NCBI GenBank assembly: GCA_025786725.1
Contig: JAHLTZ010000035.1
Coordinates: 124,001-188,000 of the forward strand
Reading direction: 5' to 3'
Length of the DNA: 64,000 bases
Source of the DNA: Syncephalis fuscata S228
Taxonomy: Eukaryota; Fungi; Zoopagomycota
Shown here: positions 39,142-53,443 of the stretch, in pieces
Position numbering within the stretch: the stretch's first letter is position 1
Layout of the letters: every line of letters starts with the position of its first letter
Notes under the pieces: generated by a model
Databases searched by the model: none
Seen by the model: only the letters and a program-made list of their open reading frames with translations
What the model was told of the DNA's origin: nothing
Translations under genes and position numbers: made by a program

Positions 39142-39576
39142 TATTCTCTTTGTTTTTTCTTTCTCTCTCTCTCCCCTCATTGCATTGTGAGCAACTATTG
39201 CTCATTTAAAATTACCTTTATAGCGTTTAATAAAAGGAACTAGTATTTTTTAATTATGTTTTTATCACTTGTTTAATTGTTTAATAGGCTAACAAAGTAA
39301 GATTGTAAAAGTCAATTTAACATATTTAGTCTTTAATATTCATACTGGTTTATCTTCTTTAAATTACAAAGCAATTACAATATATTATTGTAATTTTTTA
39401 CTATTTAATTACTGTATTACTGTATAAATTATAATAATAATAATATATTTATAAAGCCAAAAAAATTTACTATCGTCTAATAATTATAATGCTTTATAGA
39501 TACAGATATTTATCATAGTTAGTATTATTACCGTCAATATCGTGTAAATGTTGTATGAAATGAGGAAACAAATTTA

Positions 39577-42500
39577 TTAGCAAAGTTTCATAAATACGAG
39601 ATAGTATGCCTAAGTAATTAATTAATACAATCTAGTCTATTATTAATAATGATTCTATAATCTTACATGAACAATCGGCAAGTAGCGCTGCGGAGAATCC
39701 TCAGGCAAATCATTTATGTGTATTTCCTGATAATTCTTGTCCCATTTATATGGATCACGCGAATAGCCATTAGGCACGGTAACGACCAATTCTTTCAACT
39801 TTAATTGATCCGTTCGAAATGCTCGATTCATATCCTCAAGTACAAGCATTCCCAGCGGATAGAGTAATTGTTCTTGCGGGTCGGTCGAATTACTATTGCT
39901 AGAAACGTGCGGAATACGTACATCTTTCAATCCGACGATAAAAAAACCTGATACACATAAGTCAGCGTAAGCTTGTTGAGCCGCTTGAACAATACGACAA
40001 CGATAGGCAGCTAATTGCTCAAAAGTTGTGAAAAATGGTCGTTAATATCAGTATCTTCAATATGTGGTATAATAACAATTGTAAGTGGCACATTGCCATC
40101 CTCAATCGGTGGTGAGCCATACAGTAATTTCTCCAAATGAGGTACATCATTGGCATCATCACCCAAATCCGTAATAAGCCCTATAAACATAATTAAGAAT
40201 AATGAGTAAACTATTATATACAAATCTATTAACATTACCAGTGACATCAACATTTGATTATTTTCAACAATTTGTTTCTTGCGCCGTTCTTCGTATGTTG
40301 CTGGTGCAGAGTCACCTTCAGGTTCATTATCTAATACATCAATTATTAGTATTGCCTTATTATTTGTTATTAAATAACTTACGAGGTAGACTGGGCGATA
40401 TGGGCTGTTCATCAGTTTTCTACATAAATATTATCAAATTATTAGCCTTCCAAGCTTTAGTCAATCAATCGATCAATCAATCATCTTACCTTTAAACTGT
40501 CGTCATGGTATAAACAAATTTCCTTCCAATTTGTATCATCTTTGCCAAATCGTTCAACCTAACATTCATTGTAAATAACATAAAATGCATGTTAAACAAG
40601 TCGTTTACCATACGGGACATGCATAACTGCGAGAAGGTATAGTTGGTATCAGCTCTGAAAGTCCAGACTGTGCCCATAATGACACTTTGTCGACTAATCG
40701 GCAAGGCAGGTACACGTCGAAGTATTTGTTTTATTTCCGATGCTGTTGTCGATAAATCAGTAATATCTAAACAAACCATATTCAGTTTATTATTCACAAC
40801 AATACTAATGGTCATTATTACTACATACCTTCATCTAGCGCATAATAATCACCGGTGGGTCTATTGGTTATTTTACGCACGTAATGATAAACTCATGTGT
40901 AAAACATAGAAAATCATATTGAACACACAGAAATGTGCCAAGTCCAAACGCAGAACAATAACGCTGTCGTTTTACCACCTAAGCATTTACGTAATCATTT
41001 ACGTAATTAGATTCACCAGCTATTATAATCACTTCACATTTACCAATTCCTCCAATTGATAACCATTATCAATATACGTGCGTAATAAATCGAATCCAAC
41101 TGGAATATAAAAACAAAACTCTCGATTATCGCCAATACCAATGGTACATCTTCCGCCTGGTTTCAACAGTCTATCATCGCCGTTAATCAGATTGCTTTAT
41201 CAATTCCATATAATTTGTATGTACCTCCATGCTGTTTGTGCCACTTTGGCCATTTCTTGATAAAATTCCTGTGAATTAGCGAATCGTGATAAATCACCCT
41301 GTAAACCGGCCGAGTATTCAACACAGTCTTTATAAGGTGGATGTGATAGGACATGATCATAAGATCCATCAATAAACTGATTTCCTTCTAAATAGCGAGC
41401 ATCTGACTTTAGAATAATGGGCCGTAAATCGCCGGTAATTCCAAATTCTGGTGGTACAGCAAACGAACAGTTTTTTTGTGACAATGCCACTGCCGTCTGA
41501 TTTTATTCTATGAGTTAATAACAAAGCTAACCATTTCACTTTGGTTTATCTTACCGGATTGATATCAACGCCAACACATCTAAATAGAATAGTTTTAGTG
41601 TATTAATACATGTTCATCCAATCAAACGTAAACAGCTACCTTCGTTGCAGTAAAAACGACTCAATAGCATCAGTACCTCGACCAAGAAAGTTTGATAAAA
41701 TACGATCATTTTGACGTGTATATCGTAATAACGCTCTAATTATCATTAGCATATTGCAGTTACAATGCTATAATCTATTACCTTCTAACCGTTTGAGGTA
41801 GCCATGTTCCTATTATAATAATCATTAATGTTGATACGAATATTAGTACTAATAAGAAAATAATATATTTAATACTTGCCATGATAATCTGTACCGGAAT
41901 GCGTAGCCCCTATAGTTATCATCGATTACAATAAATATTACATTAAAGTTGACACCAATAATGGCACACTTACAACGTGGTGCTCTTCCAGGAATATCAA
42001 AGTAGGTTGAATCATATGGCAAAGAGTACATCTGGTGTTCTTCAGGACCGTATGATTCAAGATATTTGGCATTGGACTGAGTCTCTTCAAATCGGCCATC
42101 AGTATAACAACGACGGGTCAAATATGGATTATGCATGTAATCATCCACATCTCCTACGTAGCCTTCATGGCTAGTGAGTTGTTCTGCATTGCAGGAAGAG
42201 GCTGTTGTAGCTGCCATTGTTGCATTAGCCTCCTCATCCGGTAATGTTATTTTTGTTTGCAATGATGTGTCCTCTATTGATACTGATGAGAGTGGCGGTG
42301 GCGATGGCGGTGGTAGCAACAATGATGGTGGCGGCGAAGAACGTTCCGGCTCTAGTGCATCAATAGCATCAGCAATTGTAGCTGTTGTAGGCAGTGTGAT
42401 CTTGAACTGGCAAAACATCGCTCACACACTCGTACTCCATTAAATACTAAATATTATACATCATTTATTCATATTAGTATTTATCATATTGGTTGCATAT

Positions 42501-45500
42501 ATTTTTTATCGACTACTATTACTCACTCTTACGCCAAGTAGGTGATGCATCGGTCCAACAATAAGAACAACGAGTTACACGTGCAAATCGAACACCTCGC
42601 ATGCCCGTCCAATGTTTACGTTCTATTAAACATGTTAGCAACTAGCCAACTATCATAGCAATAGCTTAATTATCATACGTTTTTTAACAGGATTGGGTGT
42701 ATTGTTGGCAATAATGGTTTGATTAACGATCATATCCTTGCCTAAGTAAATGATACAATTCCGGTTATTAAAAGTACTATTTATTTAATTGTTACTTACT
42801 TTTACCTGTAAAGACATTTGATGTATGTTCATGATTCCATGGATCGGTCTCAGAAGTAAAGCACTATAATGGTAATAGCAATAGAATAATCATTTAATCC
42901 ATTCTTATTTACACTATTAGCCATTAATTACCTTGCTACATAAGTCATAAGTTTGAAAAAAGTCTTCACACTTTGTACAGCTGAACCACGTATCATCAAG
43001 TTGTGCATCACATCGATTACATGAAAATATATCAATATAAGTATCTAATAGTAGAAATTATTAAGTAATATAAATAGTGGCAATGTCTTTAACTCACCAA
43101 ATTTGTGATTTTTTACTTCATGTTGCGGACACCAAAAGACAATGCCTTGACGGAAATTTTCAATTGGTTTGCCCGTGCAACCTAAATGGAAACTTCTACG
43201 ACATTTTGGTTCAAAACAACCAATAGTTGCACCACGTTCTTGACAGCCAATACAGCGCTAAATATATCATATATATAATTTAGATAACCATGTATTAATA
43301 CATATATACATGTATACAAAATACTTACCAATTTCTTGCCACGCCGTACAGCAGCTGTTACATTATACCAAGTACCATCTAAAGCAACGTGTACTTCAGG
43401 TGAGAACCGAGCACAAGCATCGTGAACCCAAAAACGTTGACGAGCTAATTAAATAAAATTGATATTCAGCAAGAGCAACGCAAACAACAATAATGACTTA
43501 CCAGTTACTGCTTTAAGTAGTTCAGTATCCATAGCTGCTATTGTAATAGCAGTACTATCTTCATTGGCCGGTAATGGTGCCATTAGATCTGAATGTAAAT
43601 GACCTTGATGCTGCTGCTTATGACGACGTTGAGCTGATGAAAGTGTACGTATAGTTCTTTTCGACACTGTTTGTGGATCTTGCATAAGGAATGGATACGG
43701 ACTGTGGCGACATATTCAGAACACGTGGTACACGGGTACCACGTAATCGATGTGTCAAGCCAGCTATAAAAGCTGGAATATTTACATTTATTAATAAAGT
43801 AGTTCAATCCTAAGAAAAACCTTTTATTACAAGATCCTAGTGTTTTATCTACCTTGCCGTATTACTCAGTCCCCCTTCATAATAGTAATACGACAATTGG
43901 TGGAGGACCTGGGCAGTTTGCCCATAAACTGCCCGTTCGCGTAGTCCCAATACTACAGATATAACACTATTTGATAGTCTCTACCATCGTAACATTCATA
44001 TTCATTCTCGTACCTCACTTCCATCAAATCATCTCATTGTTCATTGTTCATTGTTAATAACCATGTCTAGTATAACCCGTTCTGGTCGTAGTACGCGTAA
44101 CTCAGCAGCCGCAATGGCTACTGACGAGCCGGTACCCGACAATATGTCCGAAGTAAGCGGTACTGATGAAGTAGCATCAACTGAAACAGAAGAAACCGTT
44201 GATGAAGTCGTCCAAGTTGACCAACCAATAGCTACGGTTCAACAACAAGAAAATATTACTAGTACTCGTCCGGTGACATTCGCTACTCCAATCGATACAC
44301 CTACTGATACTAATAACTTAACGGTAGCTGTACCCGTCGCTAGTCAAGCATTAGTAGATAACTTATTACGCACCATTCTAAATCCTACCAACGGACTCAC
44401 TGTTCACCAAACAGCTCAATTGACAATGTCGCTGGTACACGCTTTTCGACAACTCAACCCAGGAGACCCAAATCCTCCAATTCCTACCTACACACCAGCT
44501 CCACAGTTCACTGTAGAAACGCCTGGCACTGCCCCAATTGCAGAACTTGGTCCACCTGACAACAACACCACACCCACACGCATCAACAGACGAGTGTCCA
44601 TTTCGTCCATAGATTCGGACGACTCTGACACCACATCCATCACCTCATCTTTCCCTTCCATTGCAGATAGTCAGCCTGAACCTGTTGCTGTTGTACCACC
44701 TGTGGTCACACAGCCACCCGACTTGAGTGTCCCTCAAGTGATGACTAAACTACCAAAAATGGATATTGACAAACTAGATTTTAAAGCGGATCCTTTTGAA
44801 TGGCTGCGTAGCTTCCACTTGATTGCTGGTTTGTCAGGATGGGATGAACCCACGAAATGCAGTCGATTGATGTACGGTCTGCGTGACCGCGAGAATGCAT
44901 GGTGCCTACTCAATATGCCGCGTGTCCAATCGTACCAGCCTGGCCTATTCGCGACGTTAGTAAAGGAGTTAGAGATTAAATGGTGTGCTGGTGATCCAAA
45001 AGAAGCGTTGAAAAACAAATTTTACTTACTTCGCTTAAACGACAAAGAAACATTATTCGAATACGCCGATAGAGTTGAAAGAGCTGGTACCAATGCCAAA
45101 AGGACGCCTAGACAAATTTGGAAACAGATCAAAATCGGTTCTAACGACTACGTCCGCAGCAATGTCCGCTCGTTACGAATCCGTTCTATCGATGACTTTC
45201 GATCTGTTGGTCATAGTATTGAATTAGGAAGATACACCCATAAGTTACTGCATGCGGCTAAGGCCAGCATAAACGTTGTTACTAATGACCAATCTCTGTC
45301 CGTGTCCAAGACGGCACCCAATGCAATGCAAGTAGGTACCCGTTCCGGCAATAACCGTCGCCCCAAACAACAGCCAGCTACACGTCGCTTCCCTTGTACC
45401 CTCTGTGATGATACGAATCACTACACGCATCAATGTCCAAATTTAGCCACTGCCCGTGCATCGATAACCAGTAAACTACCTGCTGGTGATGCCAAACAGG

Positions 45501-48500
45501 CGGAAAACTAAATGGGACGTCGATGTGTAAGGGTAACGACGTCCCACCCCAAGTAAATCCCTTATCGACCATATCCGCAATTAATGTTGCTTCCGCTACC
45601 ACATTATTGCAGGATGGAACGATTAATGGACATATGGTATCGATGTTAATTGATACGGGTGCTGAACGAACGGTTATTTCTAGCGCTATATGTAGAAATA
45701 TTGGCCTTGTCTTAGGCCCGTTCACTGATTCATTCGTTAGATTAGCTGATGGCCGACACGCTAACACTCGTGGCCACTCCTTGGTGGATATCGAAATAGC
45801 TAGCGTTGTTCGGAAGGTTAAAGCAATAGTATTAGATACTTCCCCGTATCCAGTATTATTAGGCATGGATTGGTTATCCGCCGCTGGTGCCAGCATTGAT
45901 TGCGCAGCTGGCAAATTGTTTATTGATGGCCAATCCATTGACATGAAATTGTCCAACACTCCATCGCACGGTATACATGTAGTTGCCGTGGCTGGAAAAG
46001 TCCGTAATGGCCGGATACTTTCTAAGTTACAACAGCACTTAGTAAGACGGGATATCCGACCTACCGAGCAAGTTGATAATGCCGTGGTATCATTGGCACT
46101 ATCCCAACTACCTCGAGTAGATCTGTCTGAGTCCATCCGACTAGCCCGACTCAACAAACTGTTACTGGAATATACGGATCTATTCGCGGTAAATCCGAAT
46201 AATCCACAAGCAGCTACTAGAGTTCGCCATACCATTAGTACTGGTGACTCTAAACCCATTAATACTCCTCCGTACCGTTCTGCTTACCGTCAACGTGAAA
46301 AGATAACTGAAGCCATTAACGATATGCTTGAGAATGGCATTATTGAACCATCTCGCAGTCCTTGGTCATCTCCAGTTGTCCTTGTTGGTAAGAAAGATGG
46401 TGGTGAACGTTTTTGTGTCGATTATCGTAAATTGAACGACGCCACTAAGAAGGATTCATATCCTACGACTCGCATTGATGATGCACTAGATATGTTATCT
46501 GGTGCCTGTTGGTTTACTACTTTGGACCTTGCCTCTGGCTATTGGCAAATCCAAATGAACGAAGCAGACAAGGAAAAGACAGCCTTTGTTACACATGCTG
46601 GCCTATATCAATTCCGTGTCATGCCATTTGGCTTATGCAACGCGCCAGCGACCTTTCAACGATTAATGGACGAAGTATTGGCTGGTCTGAAGTGGCATTC
46701 ATGTATTGTTTACTTAGACGATATTATTGTATTTGGTAGGACGTTTGATGAACACCTACAACGTCTACGAACAGTTTTTAATCGTCTACGCGATGCTGGA
46801 CTTCGCCTTAAACGTAGCAAATGTCACTTTGGCCAACAACAAATAGCCTATCTTGGCCATGTCGTGAATGCTAATGGTGTTAAACCAGACCCAGATAAAG
46901 TCGCTGCTGTGCATAATTTCCCTCGCCCTACTGATATACGTGGCTGTAAAAGTTTCCTTGGTCTTGCATCCTATTATCGACGCTTTATTAGCCGTTTTGC
47001 CGAACGAGCCGAGCCCATTCGTCGCCTTGAGAAGAAAGGTACACCCTTCGTGTGGTCAGACGAACAACAAACCGCCTTCGATGATTTACGCACTACATTG
47101 ACTAGTGATACTGTGTTAGCTTATCCAACACTATCTAAGCCGTTTCGAATTGAAACTGATGCTTCTACTTACGGTTTGGGCGCAGTATTATCGCAACAAA
47201 TCGACGATGGATGGCGACCGATTGCTTATGCCAGTAGAGCGTTGAATGATGCACAAAAGAACTATTCAGCTACCGAATGCGAATGTATGGCTATTGTATG
47301 GGCCATAGAGAAGTTCCGACCTTATATATACGGTAGTGAATTTACAGTAGTCACTGATCACTCAGCTCTACGTTGGTTAATGTCACGACCCAATCCAACT
47401 GGTCGACTTGGCCGTTGGGCATTGAAGTTACAGGAATACCGTCCGACTATCGAATATAGGCGTGGTACTGCCAATGCCAATGCAGATGCCTTGTCACGAG
47501 ATCCGTTGCCATGGCACGAACTAGTTGAACTAGCTGAACAAGACAAAGTAGAAGAAGTAATGCACATAGCTGAAAATACAACACCGTTGCTACCAACTGA
47601 AGAAGAATGGGTATATGCACAACAAACAGAGTTAACTACTGCTGATGTATATGCTTATTTACAACAAGGTGCTGAGTATATGACGCTAATGTCCGATGCT
47701 AGTCGGCGTGCTTTACGAAAACGTGCTAAACGCTTTGAGCTAGTGACTGGTCGGTTGAAGAGGAAGGTTATGAAAGGCGATGTGATGACAGAGTTGTTGG
47801 ATGTTGTGCCTAATCAATATCGACCTATAGTTCTATATCATTGTCATGATAAAGAATTAGCTGGTCATTTGGGTATTACTCGTACTTACCAACGACTACG
47901 TCAGAGCTACTGGTGGCAGAATATGCATAGTGATGTATGCGACTATGTGACATCGTGCACAGTATGTCAGAAGATACGACGAATACACCAACGATCTGGA
48001 TTATTACAATCACTACCAGTGCCAGAAAAGCCATTCGACTTTATTGCCATCGACCTTATGGGTCCATTTACTGAGTCTGAACATGGTAATAAGTACGTAG
48101 CTGTATGCTGTGATTACACCACGCGTTGGATTGAAGCCGCTGCTATCCCAGATGCAACTGCAGAAACTACAGTACAGTTCCTGATGAATAACGTTATTGC
48201 TAGACACGGCATGCCTAGTGTACTACTTACTGATGGTGGTACTAACTTTACATCTGGATTAACTGCCGGTATTGCGAAACGACTTGGCATACAGCGACGG
48301 ATTACCTCCGCACGACGTCCACAGACTGACGGACTAGTTGAGCGTTTTAATCATACACTTGCATCGATGATCGCTAAGTTCACTAGTGATTTCGAAAAAG
48401 ATTGGGATAAATATCTACCCCTGCTATTGTTTGCATACAGAACAACGAAACAGTCATCCGCTGGCCACTCACCATTTCAGTTACTATTCGGCCGAGAGGC

Positions 48501-51500
48501 GACTCAGCCATTAGAAGTAGCAGTTGGCCCTGTTTCAACGGCTCCAGTTCGGTTCCATAAGAGAGTAGAAGAATATGAGGAATACGTCACCGATCTGCAA
48601 CTCCGACTCAATGATGTCAGGGAAAGAGCCAAGTTAATGATTGAAGCGGCCCAACGTCGGCAGTCGGCTAGGTATAATAAAGGAAGAAGAAAAGAACCAT
48701 TTAAAGAAGGTGACTTAGTGTGGATAGAAGAACAACTACTAAAAGGTACGAAGTTGAGAAAGATGAAAGAAAGAATGAAAGGTCCTTTTAAAGTGATAGA
48801 ACAAACGTCAGCTGTCAACTACAGACTCAAGGATTTGGAAACACAAAGAATGTTTTCAGAACACGCTGATCGAATAATTCCACTTCACACACGACCTGCC
48901 CATTTATTATTACCCAACATATCAATTAACCAAATATCATTATCTAACCTTTCCACTAATTCACTTAATGTGTCAACGGGACGTTCGACACTTAGTGAGG
49001 GAGTGATGTGGCGACATATTCAGAACACGTGGTACACGGGTACCACGTAATCGATGTGTCAAGCCAGCTATAAAAGCTGGAATATTTACATTTATTAATA
49101 AAGTAGTTCAATCCTAAGAAAAACCTTTTATTACAAGATCCTAGTGTTTTATCTACCTTGCCGTATTACTCAGTCCCCCTTCATAATAGTAATACGACAC
49201 GGACCAATGAAATCACCTAATTCACCACCTGTTTCATCATCATTACAAAGGGCACATCGACGCCGTTTTGACCATCGTTCAAGAAATGCGTATCCTGTAT
49301 CTGCCTCGGCTAAAGATGCTTTGACTGTTACATTTATTGGTTCTACTGCAGTAATAGCCGACGCTGTTGTCGCTGTTGTAGTTGATATGCCATCTCGACC
49401 ACAAGCTGCACTAAATTCTTCAAGTGTCTTTGTAGCATCCAGTAAGTCGGTCTTTGGATTGAATGTATAATCAAATAGATCAAGTTCGTAGCGTACAGCC
49501 AATTCACGCGTTGTTTTAACTGAAGTAATACTTGATTCATCTAATACACACTGTTCGGCAAATGAAGATCGAGGATGTTGATGATGCCAAGGAAAGAAAT
49601 TGGTAAAGCAACTGATAATATGTAATAAATAGATGATTGTATCTAACTTAGTACTAATAAAGTGATAAATAAAGACGTAACCTACTTGATACAAAGTTCA
49701 AAACTAGAATATGTTTTATCTTGAGAAGGAATTTCGCAATACGTACAATAATAACTATAATAATAGGCAATATTAATAAATATATAAAATATATAAAATA
49801 TTATTAATACTTACCGGAATTGTCTAATGACCATACGACATTGATCACAATAAAGTAACCACGATTCTCCCTCTAATCATCAGTATAATTTTGTATTAAT
49901 TACTATTACTGTTATTATGGTTACATCACAAATTAAACTAATTACCTTCATTGGCCATATCCTCTCGAAAATATTCAATTTCAGTTGGTTCTTCGGTGTT
50001 TTCCTGTTTAACCGGTAATCCATGATGATGATGTTTTTTACGCGATATCTTTATTGACTTAGTTGATCGTGGAGATCTTGTATTTGTGTGGTCATAATTA
50101 ATCATATCCATTCGTGTCTTTTTACCCAGATTATCTAAATCTAATTTATCAAATGACTATTATTATAGTATATTTCAATGTAATGATTCGTTAGTTACTA
50201 ATAAGTTAATTGGCACAATTAGCACTTACTGCTTGATTGAGGGCCCATGGCGGTAGTAAAACGCGCCGTTTGCCACGAAGTCCTGTAGCAAATAATGGCT
50301 CACAGCCTGGACATAGTACAGTCGATCCAATAATTCTAAATTGTAGATCAGGATCTATAGTATCCGGTGCCTCAGTACGGCAAGATTCACAGCAAACGCG
50401 TTTCGATTCAAGTGCTGAATTCTCTGCAGCAACTGATGCCATATCTTCTATTTCTGAAGAATGCCCCTTATACTCATCGTCGCCTTCTTCTTCTTCTTCC
50501 TCCTCTTCCTCGTCTTCCGCCTCCTCATCTCCACCGTTAAACTTTGAATTAAAAAAAGCATTCAAGCCATTAACTGACGTATTTGCAACACTTAGTCGAG
50601 CTCGTTTCTTTTTACGAGACGTTTTTTGGCTTCGTTTACGGGATACACGTGCAGCTGGCTAATAAACAGTTATAACATTAATTAAAAGTTAACAAATCTA
50701 TTGTTTTGCTACTTACATCTGAATCATGTTGTTTTATACGACTAGCCAGTAGCTTTGTTTGCGTTGCAGCTCTTGAGAGAAATAAGGGCACACAATTAAT
50801 ACACACCATTAATTGGCCAATATGTACAAGTGCATGCCCTTTGACTGCATCACCACAACACTCGCATAGTGGATCATTAATGGTAGGTTTTGGATTTAAT
50901 GATACAATCGATGTTATAATTTCATTAGAAAGTGTAGCCTCTACAGTTAAAGGTACATCATTGGCGAGTACTATTTCTGATGATGACTTTTTGGGTGTAT
51001 TCTTTAAAACCGTACTATTTACTTTTAAAGTAATTGGTGTTTTTTGAGTTGAGTTACCATCCGTAATAGGCGCAGTACGAGCAGTACGACCACGACAATT
51101 AAAAACAAGTGCACAGGCTGGACATACCATTAACTGTCCAACATGGCGTAATCCATGTACAGCTATACAGCCACAACTCTCACAAGGTAATCGTTGTTGT
51201 TGCTGCTGCTGTTGCTGTTGATGTTTCTGTGTCACTGCTGCTGCTGCTGCTGTTGTTGTTGTTGTTGTTGCTGTTGCTGTTGTAGAAGTTTTAATATCCA
51301 AACTTGATCCATTTAACGGCTGTTTAACTTCAGATCGTCGACTTCGACTTTTAACTTGATGATTCATCAACGATGATGGCTGTCGCTTTTTAGTCGCTAT
51401 ACTATTTACTGTAGATGTCGTTTTATGGTGCTTTAACGAGCGCGATGTTGCTAATTTGGTACGATCAGGCACATCGGATGTCAGTAATAATGTAGAATCT

Positions 51501-53443: not shown

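Follow-up and report, generated by a model that had tools for sequence, protein, structure and literature searches.

A bacterial-type amino-methyltransferase fused to zinc fingers in Syncephalis fuscata: a probable DNA adenine methylase of an early-diverging fungal family, with its gene copy interrupted by a retrotransposon

A fungal gene in which chromatin-type zinc fingers precede a methyltransferase of bacterial type raises the question of whether fingers and enzyme are made as a single protein and what such a protein would methylate. This gene lies in a window of 64,000 nucleotides (nt) from Syncephalis fuscata S228 (GCA_025786725.1, contig JAHLTZ010000035.1, positions 124,001 to 188,000; the coordinates below are those of the window). 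It is an intron-rich gene on the minus strand that occupies positions 39655 to 53443 in about 24 exons, with the ATG at 53443 and the stop codon at 39655-39657, and it is interrupted by a transposon. It encodes zinc fingers of chromatin and DNA types, a bacterial-type Rossmann methyltransferase, and a degenerate second methyltransferase module. An earlier reading made from the letters alone (the sequence-only reading) had described seven C4 repeats, a ZZ finger, an extended PHD finger, a second ZZ finger, and a GATA-like finger joined to a methyltransferase in one multi-exon gene, and had proposed a chromatin-targeted writer of N4-methylcytosine (4mC) or N6-methyladenine (6mA). This architecture is confirmed here, and the gene is probably best explained as encoding a DNA N6-adenine methyltransferase of a published family, Group-1 Clade 4.

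The RNA evidence comes from the single public run that covers the stretch (X1, 2017; same organism), aligned to positions 39560-44200. A transcript contig of 4,622 nt aligns to 39666-43702 as 19 pieces, with 18 joints of 46 to 80 nt between them. Among the 15 joints listed, 13 begin and end as CT..AC when read on the plus strand, corresponding to GT..AG on the minus strand, showing that the contig is a spliced mRNA. Within this contig, the exons for the PHD, ZZ, and GATA fingers are joined to those for the methyltransferase and the C-terminal part. Past 43702, its next 30 letters are exactly positions 49205-49234, and 1,713 nt of it lie beyond the transposon site; by exon arithmetic, this far part should extend to approximately 51.1 to 51.2 kb, into the region of the C4 fingers. 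Because one spliced contig spans 39666-43702 and then continues at 49205, fingers and enzyme are carried by one mRNA, for which this locus supplies the transcript proof. At each of the four N-terminal junctions, a canonical intron of 50 to 73 nt would keep the reading frame, and tblastn with five orthologues is collinear over 49870-49200 and 43448-39583. Two separate genes, one for the fingers and one for the methyltransferase, are ruled out by the contig together with the collinear orthologues. The homology searches, fold comparisons, and tree described below used single exons and orthologue proteins as queries.

The active methyltransferase domain is spread over eight exons at 40829-42145 (minus strand). 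Direct reading places motif I, NFLGRGT, at 41672-41692, GVDINP at 41555-41579 on a micro-exon of 25 nt, the catalytic HPPY motif at 41332-41343, LLKPGGR..GIGDNR at 41042-41170, and KRQ..THEF at 40829-40976; the first three of these are the motifs picked out in the sequence-only reading. Upstream, a stretch reading RW / ATHSGTDYHG / TWLPQTVR is split across three small exons. The motif order is unpermuted, with NFLGRGT ahead of HPPY (motif IV), and the permuted order of the PF01555 type, in which the catalytic motif precedes the S-adenosylmethionine (SAM) motif, does not occur in this domain. Single methyltransferase exons of the window retrieved no Pfam match. Fungal orthologues score 27 to 35 bits against PF01555 (cut-off, 26.7 bits), apart from P0004 at 26.5 bits and P0001 with no match, and they match it in swapped order, profile positions 145-220 first and then 2-147. 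The H, P, P, and Y residues are invariant in an alignment of 29 fungal and prokaryotic relatives (A4). From archaea to fungi, no variation is seen in HPPY, in GDNR, in the glycines of motif I, or in the aspartate of motif II. This invariance across deeply separated fungal lineages argues for purifying selection on catalysis and for a working enzyme.

The second, degenerate methyltransferase-like module occupies 39655-40766 (minus strand), as supported by alignment A3, hhalign, and an AlphaFold2 (AF2) model of an orthologue. It is conserved in the orthologues (A3), where residues of the PHI type replace the PPY motif, and hhalign aligns it to the second half of the active domain (probability 76%, E value of 2e-5). 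In the AF2 model, the module folds into another Rossmann-like domain, into which a helical segment is inserted (predicted local distance difference test score, pLDDT, 81; predicted template-modeling score, pTM, 0.85). Within the module, a KRI-like helical insert (TYEERRKKQIVENNQMLMSL...) is encoded by exons 40238-40330 and 39655-40178. In the orthologue from Calcarisporiella (P0006), the protein runs on past the C-terminal module into a RabGAP-TBC domain (residues 2039-2236), most likely as a result of a merged gene model.

The relatives of this enzyme were sought with the 90-residue HPPY exon among 1.84 billion representative proteins. This search matched 76 relatives, the top ones being fungal proteins of 1,300 to 2,450 amino acids (aa). 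They belong to Glomeromycotina, Mortierellomycotina, Kickxellales, one species of Mucorales, Basidiobolus, Neoconidiobolus, Calcarisporiella, and chytrids; besides the last four, among which several chytrids are represented, the genera are Entrophospora, Funneliformis, Geosiphon, Actinomortierella, Mortierella, Benniella, Hesseltinella, and Coemansia. Names from Dikarya, animals, or plants were absent among the 18 eukaryotic relatives looked up, 13 of which carried an organism name. A quick unrooted IQ-TREE tree groups the 21 eukaryotic sequences in a single clade with an SH-aLRT support of 100 but does not reveal the donor. The orthologues carry MBT, chromo-like, and Tudor-like repeats, extended PHD and ZZ fingers, and the PF01555 match.

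These properties are those of Group-1 Clade 4 of Iyer, Zhang and Aravind (BioEssays 2016, PMC4738411), which was described as unpermuted, confined among eukaryotes to basal fungi, fused to ZZ, PHD, and GATA domains, and provided with an additional, inactive methyltransferase domain at the C terminus that contains a KRI insert, with prokaryotic relatives in DpnII systems. Repeated losses in fungi were inferred for this clade, and the prediction was of an adenine methylase targeted to chromatin, with single-stranded DNA as a possible substrate (PMC4738411). The unpermuted domain, the ZZ/PHD/GATA fusion, the inactive second domain, the restriction to early-diverging fungi, and the DpnII-linked prokaryotic relatives were all found here, and, judged by its sequence, the window gene is a member of Group-1 Clade 4. 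The proposal of an epigenetic writer therefore stands in outline but not in its novelty, the architecture having been described computationally in 2016. Compared with that description, the window member has seven C4 fingers, lacks detectable MBT or chromo-like repeats, and is a disrupted copy. What is added here is the transcript evidence, the expansion of C4 fingers, a long prokaryotic form that carries the dead domain, and an apparent natural null allele.

Prokaryotic relatives occur at at least 558 loci and in two forms, short and long. The short form, of approximately 250 aa, lies beside a D12 Dam-like methylase (PF02086) in all 31 loci and beside a DpnII endonuclease (PF04556) in 25 of them, the others having a MutH-like or PD-(D/E)XK nuclease. 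It occupies the position of the second methylase of DpnII cassettes (the DpnA slot) and shares with the fungal domain the catalytic family, the invariant HPPY, and the motif order, with 35 to 37% identity (alignment A1), but it has neither the second domain nor fingers and always stands beside a Dam-like methylase and a GATC nuclease. The structure of the H. pylori “DpnA” (5hek) matches the window family over motif I only. Prokaryotic relatives score 60 to 106 bits against PF01555, and the bacterial short form scores 83.5 bits against this family and 27.1 bits against PF01170. In many of these cassettes the HPPY gene comes third, after the Dam-like methylase and the DpnII or MutH-like nuclease, and the NCBI pipeline (PGAP) names it “TRM11 family SAM-dependent methyltransferase” (L062:3666-6744 and 30 similar loci). 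Given the DNA methylase context, this name is probably misleading for the cassette members, and even if the enzyme acts on RNA or protein, this case would resolve the annotation conflict that surrounds them. One metagenomic “DNA modification methylase” (P0035) was rejected as a prokaryotic relative, as its contig is eukaryotic, with Arf/Ras, RRM, WD40, and MBT genes; it is a fragment of a eukaryotic orthologue whose gene was split by prokaryotic gene calling.

The long form, of 500 to 570 aa, is found in Chloroflexota, Archaeoglobus, Methanophagales, Thorarchaeota, and others. It shares with the fungal enzyme both the active domain and the degenerate C-terminal module, which is marked by invariant W, R, and D.R columns in alignment A4, but it lacks both the KRI insert and chromatin domains, and most long-form genes are orphans. 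Because the prokaryotic long form already carries the degenerate second domain, the pair of active and dead domains seems to be older than the transfer into fungi, and the study of this locus supplies evidence for that order of events. In a Methanophagales-like archaeal metagenome-assembled genome (L008/L009 6001-10763), the long-form methylase is followed, after a stop/start overlap, by genes of 214 and 450 aa without a Pfam match and by a radical SAM gene, a block that looks conserved in three contigs.

From this ancestry and architecture we infer a chromatin-directed DNA methylase. Its catalytic domain, unpermuted and with an HPPY that does not vary, is related to the DNA amino-methyltransferases of PF01555. 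The degenerate second domain in the same chain would probably be a non-catalytic partner, and the extended PHD, ZZ-like, and GATA fingers, together with the C4 fingers, a type particular to the family that has seven copies in this lineage, would direct the enzyme to particular chromatin or DNA. The reaction would most likely be N6-methylation of adenine in DNA, possibly single-stranded DNA, because the bacterial short-form relatives fill the slot of the second methylase in DpnII-type GATC cassettes; this context favors DNA N6-adenine over 4mC or N2-methylguanosine (m2G) in tRNA. A profile search of the PDB also retrieved as its best match a putative DNA modification methylase (2zie, E value of 8e-16), with aTrm11 (5e71) at 6e-10, and the region after motif IV (KRQ...HE..K) matches a DNA methylase profile. 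The earlier proposal of a prokaryote-derived amino-methyltransferase fused to chromatin or DNA readers is supported.

Several observations weigh against a DNA adenine methylase. Fold searches place archaeal and bacterial tRNA m2G enzymes first, with a Foldseek E value of 1e-11 and VIA Z scores of 19.4 for Trm11 (6zxv), 18.4 for TrmN, 17.8 for aTrm11, and 17.2 for Trm14, at a TM score of 0.57. In NCBIfam, the Trm11-like model TIGR01177 is the best match and ties with an adenine DNA methylase model, at about 3e-10 each and far below the cut-offs, and the PGAP label of the bacterial form is likewise “TRM11 family.” Motif I of the fungal proteins, SNFLGRGTD, differs from LDPFxGGGT of the prokaryotes. 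The cassette argument applies only indirectly to the fungal enzyme, since the long form, which shares the second domain with fungi, is mostly an orphan and adjoins a DpnII endonuclease in only 4 of 21 cases. The best 120 homologues of the bacterial short form include no characterized name such as DpnIIB, so that the classical DpnA link rests on the cassette position and on the work of Iyer et al. No functional study of the family, and no enzymatic evidence for any fungal member, was found in the literature, as the sequence-only reading had anticipated. The family is unmentioned in the papers on fungal 6mA (PMC11258239, PMC12019607, and PMC13297926), in a 2025 survey (PMC12695648), and in the Rhizophagus methylome paper, and full-text searches for PF01555 or N6_N4_Mtase with fungi gave nothing relevant.

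The structural matches bear most directly on an RNA methyltransferase of the Trm11/TrmN/Trm14 kind, forming m2G, or an RNA N6-methyladenosine enzyme, which the fingers would recruit to nascent or chromatin-associated RNA. Trm11 and TrmN have the same unpermuted topology and a (D/N/H)PPY-type motif, they are the best structural matches, and the sequence match to aTrm11 (5e71) is collinear. Yet the Trm11, TrmN, and Trm14 matches stand only about 1 Z unit above generic class I methyltransferases, which amounts to resemblance and not membership, and this small lead is expected because the unpermuted topology is shared; structure searches could not separate DNA from RNA methylases. Unlike the window family, Trm11 and TrmN carry THUMP domains, act on tRNA, and have no restriction cassette context, and the profile similarity to them is much weaker than that to PF01555. 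Pfam revealed no THUMP domain, either in pieces of the window or in the orthologues, no RNA-binding domain of another kind was found, and fungal members score 17 to 22 bits or nothing for PF01170 (cut-off, 22.3 bits), whose score is also far below that of PF01555 in the prokaryotic members. With the fit of the post-motif IV region to a DNA methylase and the restriction cassettes of the bacterial relatives, these observations make an RNA substrate unlikely. The grouping with tRNA m2G methyltransferases, named in the sequence-only reading as evidence that would count against a DNA enzyme, is thus less likely but has the ranking of the structure searches in its favor; sequence profiles and genomic neighborhoods speak for DNA methylases.

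The NPPY enzyme N6AMT1/KMT9 methylates H4K12, and an (N/D/H)PPY enzyme fused to histone-tail readers, with MBT, chromo-like, and Tudor-like repeats in its orthologues, might by analogy methylate lysine or glutamine of tails held by the PHD and ZZ fingers. Weak matches to PrmC/HemK and PrmA in the PDB and NCBIfam searches are consistent with such a protein methyltransferase, but they are far weaker than the DNA methylase matches, the GATA-type fingers and the DpnII cassette ancestry point to nucleic acid, and no evidence for a Trm112-type partner was found, although none was sought; a histone substrate is accordingly considered improbable. It is slightly more improbable that the fungal enzymes are catalytically dead and serve as readers of chromatin or DNA or as scaffolds, the window locus being simply a dead gene. 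The alteration of the fungal motif I (SNF for DPF), the transposon and three frameshifts of the window copy, and the fungal losses inferred in PMC4738411 would fit this explanation, but HPPY, GDNR, and the glycine and aspartate residues of motifs I and II, respectively, remain invariant across deep fungal lineages, and an intact allele is transcribed and correctly spliced.

A DNA 4mC writer has a precedent in the bdelloid N4CMT (PMC8885841), another bacterial amino-methyltransferase that a eukaryote acquired and joined to a chromatin reader. PF01555-type enzymes have switched repeatedly between N6-adenine and N4-cytosine specificity (PMC8885841), and N4-cytosine methylases are among the PDB matches, over motif I. 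N4CMT, however, is of the permuted beta type, carries a single chromodomain, makes 4mC as tested experimentally, and has the SPPY motif that is a hallmark of N4-cytosine enzymes (PMC8885841), whereas the window enzyme is unpermuted and its HPPY is invariant. As its relatives also pair with Dam-like methylases and with nucleases of the DpnII and MutH-like types in GATC (N6-adenine) cassettes, the 4mC half of the sequence-only proposal finds no support, and a 4mC writer is the least probable of these explanations. DNA N6-adenine methylation remains the preferred reading.

The fingers that would target this DNA adenine methylase begin with seven C4 fingers of the pattern CxSC..VGxLxLCxxCxxLF (50290-53329, minus strand), identified by a regular expression and direct reading at 53329-53243, 52747-52655, 52226-52140, 51634-51548, 51184-51101, 50866-50780, and 50391-50290. 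All seven have the same spacing, namely, CxxC, 14 to 22 residues, CxxC, two residues, and F. Fingers of this type also occur in the N termini of several orthologues, in one or two copies each, and in Pfam they give only weak GATA and ArfGap matches. They are followed at 49205-49870 (minus strand), in a segment found by tblastn to the orthologues that ends at the insertion site, by a ZZ-like finger, a linker, and the first CxxC of the extended PHD finger (RRRCALCNDDE...GP). This first ZZ is the weakest finger call, with ZZ_ADA2 E values of 0.03 to 0.05 in the orthologues. The remainder of the extended PHD finger lies at 43093-43702 (minus strand) in exons 43502-43702, 43329-43448, and 43093-43257, which are 50 to 62% identical to the orthologues; on 43048-43257 it exceeds the Pfam cut-off for PF13771 zf-HC5HC2H (E value of 7e-07; 29.8 bits, cut-off of 29.1 bits).

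The second ZZ-type finger (42799-43057, minus strand) is formed by exons 42932-43057 and 42799-42863, with bounds set by the transcript joints, and its first exon alone gives an E value of 0.02, compared with 7e-4 in P0006. The GATA-type finger, read directly at 42397-42622 (minus strand), is split by an intron (CSYCWTDASPTWRK / FNGVRVCERCF); orthologous GATA fingers have E values of 6e-4 to 4e-3, under the Pfam cut-off. The second ZZ and the GATA finger, which stay under the Pfam cut-offs both here and in the orthologues, are therefore motif-level calls, consistent with how the family has been described in print.

A very recent insertion interrupts the gene as assembled here, a circumstance that the sequence-only reading had not weighed. 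The inserted element is a Ty3/gypsy retrotransposon of 5,497 bp with long terminal repeats (LTRs), which lies on the plus strand at 43703-49199, inside the PHD exon. Its gag (44051-45511) and pol (45523-49050) open reading frames are both intact, its LTRs of 193 bp (TG..CA) are identical to each other, and it is flanked by a target duplication, CGGAC, at 43698-43702 and 49200-49204. Deleting the transposon and one copy of the duplication restores the reading frame, and the transcript, in joining 43702 to 49205, presents exactly this empty site with a single CGGAC. Removal of the transposon by RNA splicing is ruled out, as no register within the duplication gives GT..AG ends; this RNA therefore derives from transposon-free DNA, and the public run, which is from the same organism, contains a transcript of an intact allele without the transposon. 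Elsewhere in the genome, at least three more full-length copies of the element are 100% identical with no indels, and its transcript contigs in X1 have depth figures of about 920 to 2,590, compared with 142 for the host gene (approximately 6 to 18 times). Together, the identical copies and abundant transcripts indicate a transposon family that is young and active.

Relative to the transcript, the window also lacks a single base at each of three places on the minus strand, behind 40041, 40880, and 42396, and each deletion shifts the frame. The extra base of the transcript restores in each case the frame and the homology that are lost in the window; at 40880, the window reads THEFIITCVK-stop, and the transcript reads THEFIIT-VRKITNRPTGDYYALDE on to the next donor. 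Two substitutions (42017 and 42198) complete the five differences, all within 2.9 kb of exons, and no long homopolymers surround the deletions. A generally indel-prone assembly is an unlikely cause of the frameshifts, given the gap-free identical transposon copies and the two HSP70 genes of the assembly, which are intact with open frames of 665 and 685 aa. This clean state elsewhere leans toward real lesions, but an excess of deletions (three) over substitutions (two) would be unusual in a naturally decaying gene and may instead reflect a local assembly error. The three deletions are thus probably real, with the gene being lost in the sequenced isolate and an intact allele expressed elsewhere. 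An apparent natural null beside an intact expressed allele in one organism would, if true, be a ready comparison for finding the mark that the enzyme leaves.

The 6mA writers characterized so far in fungi are MTA1c, an MT-A70 complex acting on symmetric ApT, and MetB (PF02384), which acts asymmetrically (PMC11258239, PMC12019607, and PMC13297926). Like the window enzyme, these Mucorales enzymes are proven or candidate adenine methylases for the DNA of early-diverging fungi, and MetB too came from bacteria, but they belong to different families. The orthologues of the window gene have no PF05063 match and their motif is HPPY and not DPPW, which upholds the earlier statement that the enzyme is not of the MT-A70 type. 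If active on DNA, it would be an additional 6mA writer, wired directly to histone readers, beyond MTA1c and MetB. More tentatively, it may represent a third adenine methylation pathway of early-diverging fungi, independent of MT-A70 and MetB, in which a pair of active and dead domains derived from the DpnA slot was inherited from an orphan long form and fused to readers, and of which the sequenced isolate would be a natural knockout. Outside this gene, the genome contains at least four MT-A70 loci and no match to PF02384, suggesting that the canonical machinery for symmetric 6mA is probably present in the organism and the MetB pathway absent.

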